DNA of 63,655 bases, the filler included, from Pelomyxa schiedti (Eukaryota; Protista; Evosea): the NCBI GenBank assembly GCA_020536535.1. It is 3 parts of 3 records of this genome, joined end to end, with 100 filler letters (N's around TTAATTAATTAA, not from the genome) between each part and the next. Parts side by side here need not be neighbours in the genome. Positions count along the whole stretch, not along the records: positions 1 to 31,188 come from JAHLWZ010000379.1; 2 more parts are not named here. One strand, written 5' to 3'. Under the pieces are notes generated by a model. The model saw nothing but the letters and a program-made list of their open reading frames with translations. It made no database searches and was not told the DNA's origin. Position numbers and translations under genes: made by a program. Position 1 is the stretch's first letter. Each line of letters starts with the position of its first letter. Below are positions 1,084 to 8,093 of this stretch, piece after piece.

Positions 1084-4000
1084 ATGGACGCGGTCGATGG
1101 TTGTGTTGCGACAGTGAATACGGCCTATTTCATGAGGTCAAGATCTTCTTTCTATTATTCCCGTCAAGATCTGCATGTCGTTGTTTCGTTGTCGTCTAAT
1201 GGTTCTACAGTGATGTGTCCTTTTTGTTCCCAATCACGCCGAGTTCACCCATGGGCGAAGAGGCATCTGCTGTATGCTTTTTTTCTTTTAGTTTGTTCCG
1301 TGTCACACTAATACATTACATTAGGGTATCAAATTTTCCTGCCAACTTTTTTCTTCCCCTCACATTGTGCAATAAAAGCTGCTGACCAGAAGCGCCTCAA
1401 TATGTTTGGACAACCTTTGCTTGTGCGACAAATGCAGAGTGAAGGTTCTCAACACTTTTCCTTCCTTTATTTATTTCTTTGCTCACACTTGCTTTTAGGT
1501 GGTGCTGCTGGTGCACTTCACGGTGCTTGTACTGAAGGCGGTATTACTCATTAACTTTTCACATTGCCGTTCTTACTTTACCCAGCCCTTGCTACAACTT
1601 TCACCAGCTCTCAAGGCTTGTTATTGATGCTCCCAAATATGTACAAGATTGCTGGTGAGCTCCTTCCTTGCGTTATTCATATTGCCGCTAGAACAATAGC
1701 TACACATGTATGATTTAGTTTCTTTCGCATTACCTTTTACAAATTGTTAAGGCTTTGAGCATTTTCGGTGATCACTCAGATGTCTACGCTACTCGGTCAT
1801 GTGGATTCGCTTTCTTGTGTTCGTCAAGTGTACAAGAGTCTGCCCATATGGCTATTGCATCCCACGTCGCAACACTAAAGGCCTCTGTTCCATTTGGCCA
1901 TTTCTTTGGTATCCCTTTCCATCCAGTGCACAACTAACCACTCTGCAGATGGATTTAGGACTACACATGAAATCCAGAAAATTAAGATGCCCACTCCTGA
2001 TCAGATGCGTCAATGTGTTGATATGGAGGCGATAAATAGATTTAGGAATAGAGCACTGAACCCAGAAGCTCCAGTAGAAGCTCGTCCACTTTATTTTGTG
2101 TGACCATTTTCACAGGTACTCCGAGGAAGTGCCCAGAACCCTGATATTTTCTTCCAAGCTGCTGAAGCCAGCAATAAATTCTTTTGGGCTGTTCCAGAAA
2201 TCTTAGAGCAAGTTTTCGCCACAATTCAAGCTGTGTTTGGGGTTTCCTATAAACTCTTTGAATACTTTGGCTCCCCGACTGCCACCCACGTCGTAATATG
2301 CATGGGTTCGGGTGTGTCAATTATATCCCTTACCTCTTTAACACTCTTTTCAGGCAGTGAGGTTTGCAAGACAACTGCTGAACTTTTGGTTTCTCAGGGA
2401 AAGCAAGTGGGCTTGCTCAAGGTAGGCCAGAACTACGTCGGTCATTTTTTCACCATGTCCCTAGGTTAGATTGTATCGTCCATTCTCTGTGAAACACTTT
2501 ATTGCTGCCCTTCCGAAAACTGTGAAGTGTATCTCCGTGTTGGATAGGGGGAAAGATCCAATGGGACATGGTGAACCACTCTATTTGGACGTTTGTGCTG
2601 CCCTTCAGGAAGCTGGTATCTCTGGTGTCACTGTCACCGGAGGAAGGTCTGTGGGAAATGGTAAAAAAAATAAGTACCCATTTTTACTTAGATATGGTCT
2701 GTCATCCAAGGACTTTAATCCCGATATGGCATTGGCTGTTTTTAAAAATCTACTCTCTGCGGCACCCAAAAACCACTTCACTGTTGGCATAATTGATGAT
2801 TTAACAAACACATCGCTCTCAGTCACTGAACGTGTGTATGAAAAAGGAGACTGTAATCCTCAATATTAACAGATATTGATGTTATACCAACGGGCACTAG
2901 ACAATGTTTGCTGTGGGGTATTGGAGGGGATGGAACAGTTGGTGCTAACAAAAACGCAATCAAACTTATTGCAAACAATACTGGCCTTCATGCACAGGGA
3001 TACTTCGCTTATGACGCTAACAAAGGTTGTATAAATCCCTGTGTATATTCCTCGTTAACCAGGCATTCTTCAGCTGGAGGATTGACTGTCTCCCACTTGC
3101 GTTTTGGCCCCACGCCTTTTGAAGCCCCGTACTTTATCTCTGACAGTGACTATGTTGCCTGTCACAAGACCAACTACATCTCTCGTTTCAACTTGCTTCG
3201 AACTCTCAAACAGGGGGGCACCTTTGTTTTGAACTGCCCATGGCGCTCTGTGTCTGAACTTGATCAGTTTTTACCAGCACGGTTGCGCAAGGCAATTGCC
3301 CTAAAACGAGCCAAATTCTATACTATTGATGGCACTCGAATTGCCAAAGAAGCTCAAATGGGACCATTCGTAAACAACGTTCTGCAAGCTGTCTTTTTCT
3401 TCTTGTCAGGTGGGGGACTCATTAAGATTATTATTTTTTAACCGTACCCAAGGTGTCCTCGAGGTCGACGTCGCTATTAACCTCCTTAAGACCAGTGTCA
3501 AGAAGATGTATAAACGAAAGGGACCTGAAGTTATCCAGAAGAACATCAATGCCATTGATATGTCCCTTCACCCTGATGCACTGGTTGCTGTTGCATACCC
3601 CGACTCTTGGGCCGCACTTGCTGAAGTATACTGACTTTCACTCAGGAGATTTGTCTAATGCTTTGGTAGGACTCTCCGACCGTGGAGGGACTAATGGCAC
3701 CATCGGACCCCAGACACACGGCTTTCTATAACGATATCATGGCGCCAATAGGAAGGTTTGAAGGGGATGAAGTGCCTGTTTCAAAGATCCCTCCTGGAGG
3801 TGAATTGCCGGTTGGAACTTCACAGTTTATTAAGCGCGGTGTAGCCTCTAATGTCGGTATCCCGTTTTTGCTTCCATGTAATAACTGTCACTGATAGGTG
3901 CCCCACTGGAATTTGGACACATGCGTTCAATGCAATCGCTGTTCCTTTGTTTGTCCACATGCTGTGATACGGTCTTATTGGCTTAATGAGGAGGAATCGA

Positions 4001-7000: not shown

Positions 7001-8093
7001 CCCTCTCTTTAGGTCCCCAACAGACTTTGTGGTTCATGGACACACCATTTGTCCACTGGCCCGAGAGTATGTTTAGCTATCTCGTGGAAGAACGTGTCCT
7101 GTTCACATCTGATGCCTTTGGGCAACATGTGGCCTGTGCTGAGAGATTTGATGACCAACTTTTGAATGAGCCTGCTAGTGGCTCCACAAGAGCAACCAAT
7201 GGAGTGCCAACTACACAGGTGGGCTAAATTCTCATTGTCATTCTCATTCTTCTTTGTTAACACAAATAAGGATCTTATGGAAGTGGCTCGATCATACTAC
7301 GCCAATATCCTCATGCCGTTTGGAAAAACAATTAACACAGCTTTGGAAAAGCTCCTTCGATTACTTCCTGCTGTGGATGCTAAAAATCCCAACTTTAATG
7401 CAAGTACTGAGAAGTCACCTCTTCCTCGCGTTCTTGCTACAGCACACGGTATCGCCTGGAGGCGCGACCCCATGCTGATCGTTTCCATGTACAAACAATG
7501 GGCCGCACACACCGTTTCCCCGAAAGTTGTAATAATATATGACACAATGTATGGCTCAACAGAGAAAATGGCAAGAGCCATCTTCCAAGGTATCTTCTTC
7601 CGCATCCTCTCGTTCTCCCCATTGACACTATATCTTTAGGAGTGATGGAGACCAAGGCCGTGGACTCAAAGAAAGTTACAGCCATGCTACTGAATGTCCG
7701 ATCGAATCACCCCACTGTAATAGCCAACGAGGTTCTGGATTCTGCATGCATAGCTTGGGGCACTTGCGCGCTCAACAATGAGCCTCTGCCAACTGTCGCG
7801 AGGGCCTTCACCTACATCAAGGGACTCAAACCCACCGGCCGCAGCGGCGTCACTTTCGGCAGCTACGGATGGAGCCCCTCTACGATCAACAACCTAGGAA
7901 AAGTATGCGGAGCCTGTGTCCACTTACACTGACTAACTGGATGATTTTTTTCCTACAGGTTGCACTGGAGACGGGTATTGAGCAAGTTGTTCCACCCATT
8001 GCTTGCCAGTTCACTCCGGACGACAAGGTCCTGCAGACGTGCTACGATGCTGGTCACAAATTGGCTGAAGCTGCTTTGAAGAAGGTGGCCTAG
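1084..8093 (+). CDS. Multi-exon fusion: pyruvate:ferredoxin oxidoreductase + flavodoxin + Pro/Thr linker + flavodiiron protein (FprA/FDP)
   Basis: PFO motifs [93 protein letters not shown]; flavodoxin [19 protein letters not shown]; FDP motifs [44 protein letters not shown]; stop TAG 8091-8093. Confidence 0.92.
6235..6460 (+). repeat. Pro/Thr/Ala-rich low-complexity interdomain linker
   Basis: [38 protein letters not shown]... between the flavodoxin and FDP domains. Confidence 0.85.

Follow-up and report, generated by a model that had tools for sequence, protein, structure and literature searches.

Several described systems resemble the protein analyzed here. In the pyruvate NADP oxidoreductase (PNO) of Euglena gracilis and Cryptosporidium parvum, a full single-chain PFO is followed by an FMN domain of the CPR type, so that the acceptor module resides in the same chain (PMC6856725). 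Among flavodiiron proteins (FDPs), donor chains are fused to the FDP core in class F (T. vaginalis, Histomonas, C. difficile) and in the Stygiella FDP-ferredoxin, giving self-sufficient water-forming oxidases (PMC9364112, PMC12528894, PMC4989108). Throughout classes B–H the extra domains follow the core on its C-terminal side (PMC9364112), and the characterized self-sufficient members take their electrons from NAD(P)H (PMC9364112, PMC12528894). In the butyryl-CoA oxygen oxidoreductase complex of Fusobacterium nucleatum, an organic substrate is oxidized in direct coupling to the reduction of O2 by an FDP (PMC12528894); the complex comprises two separate polypeptides, uses an acyl-CoA substrate and relays electrons through rubredoxin. 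Giardia (2q9u), Entamoeba histolytica and Trichomonas hydrogenosomes have class A FDPs, which stand alone at about 400 aa and depend on separate donors. Work by Smutna in 2009 reportedly found that in Trichomonas pyruvate supplies the FDP with electrons by way of PFO and free ferredoxin, which would be the chain proposed below for the fusion, in unfused form.

In a 63,655-nt stretch of Pelomyxa schiedti DNA (assembly GCA_020536535.1; the window), one gene joins a PFO, a bridging flavodoxin and an FDP (Table 1). The encoded protein resembles PNO from the PFO through the CPR-type domain, but has no FAD- and NADP-binding domains; an FDP stands in their place, and the acceptor would be O2 instead of NADP+. 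With class A FDPs it shares the two-domain core, the seven metal ligands, a second-sphere Lys/Tyr pair and the fold, and it differs from them by its extra domains. In contrast to classes B–H, the FDP is itself the C-terminal module, preceded by 1,430 aa in which the donor is an enzyme of carbon metabolism. A Pfam scan of ten other ORFs in the window returned no match above cut-off.

Introns were placed by hand and the reading frame was verified by script: all introns are 37–74 nt long with GT-AG ends, and the sole stop lies at the end of the gene. The NCBI model KAH3763500.1 (P0155) corresponds to aa 47–1886 and is identical to the window exons over that range. Homology queries were single exons and later P0155; the joined translation served only for frame, size and motif positions. 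RNA evidence consists of contigs, as opposed to reads, from four single-cell runs (X1–X4) of one sample, none of the contigs spanning the whole gene. A single spliced 4,303-nt contig from X1 starts at 2961 in PFO domain III, crosses flavodoxin and linker, reaches 7218 and extends 660 nt past that point, beginning with exon 7271, and a 2,334-nt contig from X3 also crosses the PFO–flavodoxin–FDP joint. All introns between 1226 and 7270 agree with RNA joints or with per-bin exon lengths; the latter, derived from contig depth per 200-nt bin, fit the model in 34/34 bins save for 2-nt shifts at ambiguous joints. For two introns the RNA gives 3853–3897 and 4943–4991, which rules out placements at 3857–3897 and 4945–4984. 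Introns 1137–1210, 7590–7639 and 7903–7958 lie outside the stretch compared with RNA and are based on GT-AG ends, frame, homology and the identical NCBI model.

The N-terminal frame requires one extra G between 1271 and 1379, which is best explained by a 1-nt exon. The RNA contig covers 94 nt of bin 1226–1425, as this model predicts, compared with 93 or 82 nt for the alternatives, and homologues have the same residue count. The coverage of this bin also rules out a single intron at 1272–1389.

These data establish that the fusion is real and transcribed. Every feature named in the preliminary description lies where it had been placed. That description had located the joint in exon 5621–6100, intron 6101–6144 and exon 6145–6699, and all three are confirmed by the Flavodoxin_1 match, the frame and the RNA, with the intron removed in every run; from the last of these exons the frame stays open across the linker and into the FDP. 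An intron-rich metagenome locus (L019) has the junction intron too, with position and phase unchanged. The claim of a single polypeptide is supported by the spliced RNA together with independent, partly intronless homologues, and the size anticipated for it, ~1,800–1,900 aa and ~200 kDa, was right. A presequence had been thought absent, and this holds: Met1 falls at the beginning of the PFO fold and an in-frame stop lies upstream. As the fusion protein also has no PTS1, it is therefore probably cytosolic.

Table 1. Features of the PFO–flavodoxin–FDP gene, in window coordinates
Feature	Position	Strand	Basis or remarks
Whole PFO–flavodoxin–FDP gene	1084..8093	+	30 exons, 1,886 aa, 205 kDa
PFO domains I–VI, aa 1 to about 1185	1084..5690	+	TIGR02176; PDB 6cin, 1b0p; motifs
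Probable 1-nt exon (G)	1325..1325	+	Between 53-nt GT-AG introns 1272–1324 and 1326–1378
Two CxxCxxCxxxC ferredoxin-type [4Fe-4S] motifs, PFO domain V	3922..4195	+	Cys motifs in the translation
Junction exon	5621..6100	+	PFO C-terminal helix into bridging flavodoxin, without stop; Flavodoxin_1 E 5e-19
Bridging flavodoxin, CPR/CysJ (diflavin reductase) type	5737..6200	+	PF00258; top PDB matches are CPR FMN domains, E 4e-13
Junction intron	6101..6144	+	44 nt, GT-AG; removal joins flavodoxin to linker and FDP; spliced in 4/4 runs
Pro/Thr/Ala-rich flexible linker, about 85 aa	6205..6455	+	Low pLDDT, predicted disordered; variable among homologues
FDP metallo-beta-lactamase domain	6456..7510	+	PF19583; diiron ligands H1503, E1505, D1507, H1508, H1594, D1613, H1707
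FDP flavodoxin (FMN) domain	7511..8093	+	PF00258; GSYGW motif at 7858; stop 8091–8093

The PFO part scores 1466 bits against TIGR02176 (cut-off 911; profile 47–1165), and the first 46 aa lie in exons 1–4. It retains the TPP motif, the GDG and YSNTGGQ motifs, three [4Fe-4S] Cys sets including the proximal cluster Cys, the pyruvate-binding Thr/Arg/Asn (Thr of PITP, Arg of AAR), the activating Glu (QSE) and the CoA loop; the TPP, CoA, pyruvate-binding and three-cluster motifs are shared with the Moorella and Desulfovibrio PFOs. By score and motifs it classifies as a single-chain PFO. In the bridging flavodoxin, the phosphate loop at 5761 is intact, and the alignment indicates that the first FMN-loop aromatic is replaced while the second is kept as Phe. 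Neither FAD_binding_1 nor NAD_binding_1 was detected in P0155, and the three FAD_binding_1 loci of the genome are on other contigs.

In the FDP part, the seven diiron ligands, which correspond to the established list of four His, two Asp and one Glu (PMC13133992), are invariant across the nine aligned proteins. The best PDB sequence match is the Moorella enzyme 1ycf (E 4e-77), and the predicted single-chain structure superposes on Giardia 2q9u and Moorella 1ycf with TM 0.76–0.84. The ESM Atlas yielded ordinary FDP clusters only (score 0.84).

The same three-part architecture was found in Mastigamoeba balamuthi (m51a1_g5675, 52% identity across 1,820 aa), in a cDNA-like JGI contig (76% identical), in L019, which has junction intron positions in common with the window, in a Logan contig, and in the metamonad Barthelona sp. 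PCE, where KAL0229727.1 is intronless and has eukaryotic housekeeping genes as neighbours on a contig of 2.17 Mb. Three further proteins (P0151–P0153; intronless, 70–76% identical to each other) join PFO to FDP with no flavodoxin and carry a conserved CxxCH motif where it would be. The flavodoxin with its phosphate loop is kept in the Pelomyxa, Mastigamoeba and Barthelona lineages, and all catalytic and cofactor motifs are retained in eight fusion proteins. The architecture is conserved between distantly related protists. These counts are lower bounds, because the word-limited searches each missed known members. No fusion or PFO–FDP neighbourhood was found among prokaryotes in the searches made. 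A prokaryotic operon precursor was likewise rejected, as no PFO or CPR-type flavodoxin occurs within up to 6–7 kb of the 160 nearest prokaryotic or metagenomic FDPs among the matches listed, many of whose contigs are shorter than 6–7 kb. The P. schiedti genome holds seven other PFO-type loci and two other, distant FDP genes; the latter rule out the fusion as its sole FDP, and with this complement the fusion can be a specialist for oxygen exposure.

The phylogenetic trees omit part of the prokaryotic rows and four Pelomyxa paralogues that are split by introns; of L019 they include the flavodoxin exon alone. They are unrooted, include few eukaryotic outgroups and carry no direction of transfer. 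A single clade (100/99) unites the archamoebal-type FDP domains; in the PFO tree, another (100/99) contains the archamoebal-type fusion PFOs, unfused M. balamuthi PFOs and P0165. Barthelona groups with the archamoebal type in the PFO (98/93) and flavodoxin (89/86) trees, which favours, but does not establish, a single origin of the fusion; its placement in the FDP tree is unsettled, and its branch is long in all three trees. Judging from the CPR-type bridge, a PNO-like gene may have exchanged its FAD/NADP module for an FDP. The unfused members of the PFO clade terminate exactly where the linker begins, consistent with later truncation or gene conversion. We are evenly divided on the wider proposition that this is an undescribed single-gene pyruvate:O2 oxidoreductase and a new class of FDP, with PFO as N-terminal donor, that would be old in Archamoebae, share one origin with the metamonad form, probably through eukaryote-to-eukaryote transfer, and amount to a soluble one-protein “respiration” that makes acetyl-CoA and consumes O2.

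We favor the view that the fusion acts as a self-contained, cytosolic, dimeric pyruvate:O2 oxidoreductase. The PFO would convert pyruvate and CoA to acetyl-CoA and CO2 at TPP; electrons would pass from TPP through the three [4Fe-4S] clusters and be collected, as in PNO, by the tethered CPR-type flavodoxin, which would swing on its linkers to the FDP FMN; and this FMN would reduce the diiron site of the partner subunit, where O2 would be reduced to water. The net reaction would be 2 pyruvate + 2 CoA + O2 → 2 acetyl-CoA + 2 CO2 + 2 H2O. In microoxia, O2 would thus be removed beside the O2-labile clusters, and acetyl-CoA, hence substrate-level ATP, could flow without hydrogenase; in full anoxia, the fusion would stall or pass its electrons to free ferredoxin. 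PFO cores are dimeric (PMC13768988), and FDPs are head-to-tail dimers in which FMN-to-diiron transfer crosses two subunits (PMC13133992, PMC12528894). As both parts belong to two-fold homodimers, a dimer is the likely working unit, and because of the head-to-tail arrangement the last step must cross subunits, such that the path from pyruvate via FeS, FMN, FMN and diiron to O2 given in the preliminary description would run within a dimer and not within one chain. Direct wiring is favoured by the bridge being the same type of flavodoxin that accepts PFO electrons in PNO. Flavodoxins are documented PFO acceptors, the pyruvate/CoA couple lying at about −515 to −540 mV (PMC13768988), and other multidomain FDPs are self-sufficient oxidases (PMC9364112, PMC12528894).

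Against direct wiring, the flavodoxin is lost in P0151–P0153, which keep PFO joined to FDP, so a fusion can persist without its bridge, and in the Pelomyxa bridge one FMN-stacking aromatic is missing. Both observations, and the long, variable linkers, would fit an arrangement in which the FDP is merely tethered: the PFO would reduce free ferredoxin, soluble carriers would feed the FDP, and the fusion would provide co-expression and a local O2 sink. We consider this the main alternative, though unlikely. Retention of the flavodoxin and its phosphate loop in three lineages is hard to explain without electron carriage, and the flavodoxin-less forms hold the conserved CxxCH motif at the flavodoxin's place. 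A further point against direct wiring is that M. balamuthi keeps an unfused PFO, 93% identical, alongside the fusion.

The direct wiring that we prefer could also serve NO, reduced to N2O, as main acceptor, or both gases about equally. The top PDB match, 1ycf, is a bifunctional enzyme, and the determinants of FDP selectivity are unsettled (PMC13133992). The fusion has K1476 (6606–6608) and Y1742 (7550–7552) at the positions of E. histolytica K53 and Y271, a pair that occurs in the O2-selective Entamoeba and Giardia FDPs; as introducing it into the E. coli FDP left kinetics and selectivity unchanged, the pair is a correlate only (PMC13133992). Both residues are present in 7/8 fusions, the exception being Barthelona, with Trp for Tyr. 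Since characterized protist FDPs are O2-selective (PMC13133992, PMC12528894), O2 appears the more likely acceptor, and NO as the main or an equal acceptor is improbable.

We regard it as equally improbable that the gene mainly yields separate products, whether by cleavage of the protein from a single mRNA in the P/T linker or through an FDP-only transcript (for example from ATG 6204) that supplies most of the FDP. Contig depth in X2 does rise from about 105 to over 400 past 6580, and one template-switch end maps to 5926 in X4. However, single contigs from X1 and X3 cross the joint, contig depth is unfit for ranking regions within one gene, position 2961 has template-switch ends as well, and ATG 6204 is conserved neither in Barthelona nor in the flavodoxin-less forms. 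Finally, an assembly chimera, named in the preliminary description as fatal to the fusion, or two adjacent genes linked through an erroneous intron call, might be suspected from the single-cell amplification of the genome and from the stop at 6285 that unspliced read-through would meet, but spliced RNA in four runs, intronless orthologues elsewhere and the cDNA-like 76% identical contig already refute it.

The architecture is apparently undescribed. No description of a PFO–FDP fusion was found in the open-access full-text literature, a scope that leaves out most subscription papers; the word flavodiiron is absent from a November 2026 PFO review (PMC13768988), and the Barthelona genome paper mentions, with no more detail, some PFOs with extra ferredoxin or flavodoxin-like domains (PMC11316075). 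The fusion combines known parts in a new way, from which a new overall reaction is predicted, and it adds an architecture absent from the FDP classes described in the literature cited here. PFO is a classic O2-labile enzyme, and its upkeep in anaerobic protists under fluctuating oxygen is an open question; if the wiring is right, the breakdown of food itself probably removes the O2 that would poison PFO. Most protist FDPs have no known natural donor; the fusion names one, making the pyruvate-to-O2 chain testable with one recombinant protein.

The published P. schiedti set comprises six PFOs and one PNO (Pelo_2126/KAH3766013.1); none of these entries begins like the gene described here, and Pelo_2126 is a different fusion. 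NCBI labels KAH3763500.1 “pyruvate NADP oxidoreductase”, which, judged by domain content, is wrong because the protein has no FAD/NADP domain. Public databases already contain the fusion architecture, in entries whose names are wrong or empty.

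At the 5' end of the fusion gene, the G at window position 1325 is probably a one-nucleotide exon flanked by two 53-nt GT-AG introns (window 1272-1378), and the length of the RNA contig favours one additional base in this interval. Possibly, a single non-canonical 106-nt intron occupies the same interval instead. The first 46 residues of the fusion protein are absent from NCBI's model, probably because of the one-nucleotide exon. RNA and DNA also differ at window 5718 (T in DNA, C in RNA contigs of three runs) and window 4726 (T in DNA, G in the RNA contig of one run); these mismatches are probably alleles.

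In Mastigamoeba balamuthi, the gene for the long-known, unfused PFO Q8MTH4 neighbours the fusion gene and its product is 93% identical (P0281 and P0282; m51a1_g5671 and g5675), with its C-terminal end falling just past the start of the linker. The PFO-FDP fusions that lack the bridging flavodoxin share a conserved CxxCH motif in the linker, which is otherwise unalignable; the motif occurs twice in one of the proteins, P0153. CxxCH could possibly be a metal or haem site standing in for the flavodoxin. A gene for PPi-type PEP carboxykinase neighbours the L023 fusion. One fusion homologue is called as two genes owing to a single in-frame TAG at a Gln position (L026:1855-1857), which is an error, an allele or rare recoding.

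Flavodoxin-less PFO-FDP fusions and additional FDP genes
Feature	Location	Strand	Contig
Flavodoxin-less PFO-FDP fusion	L022:2602-7764		
Flavodoxin-less PFO-FDP fusion	L023:2328-7802		
Flavodoxin-less PFO-FDP fusion	L027:175-5454		
P. schiedti FDP gene, with introns	L198:3770-5175	minus	G000:C475
P. schiedti FDP gene, with introns	L199:3400-4995	plus	G000:C820

The published P. schiedti 'PNO', Pelo_2126 (L012:1630-6913, G000:C177), joins PFO to a GltD/NfnB-type module (Fer4_20 and Pyr_redox_2) rather than to one of CPR type. No FAD_binding_1 domain was found on any PFO contig of the P. schiedti genome, which therefore seems to lack a Euglena-type PNO.

The two additional P. schiedti FDPs are only ~25-35% identical to the fused FDP. 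P0158 from Pygsuia biforma (EukProt), in which the FDP precedes a flavodoxin of CPR type and then an FAD-binding domain, is a candidate NAD(P)H:O2 oxidoreductase with an architecture unlike PFO-flavodoxin-FDP. P0157 (Logan, 952 aa) joins a PTS enzyme I-like protein to an FDP part that clusters with PVC bacteria; known from one contig alone, it may be a chimera. In the intronless, metagenomic P0035 (L190:5001-9656), a PFO precedes two CPR-type flavodoxins and no further domain, and three to six such flavodoxins stand in tandem in P0001, P0003, P0004 and P0006, with Hondaea and Lacrimia among the sources.
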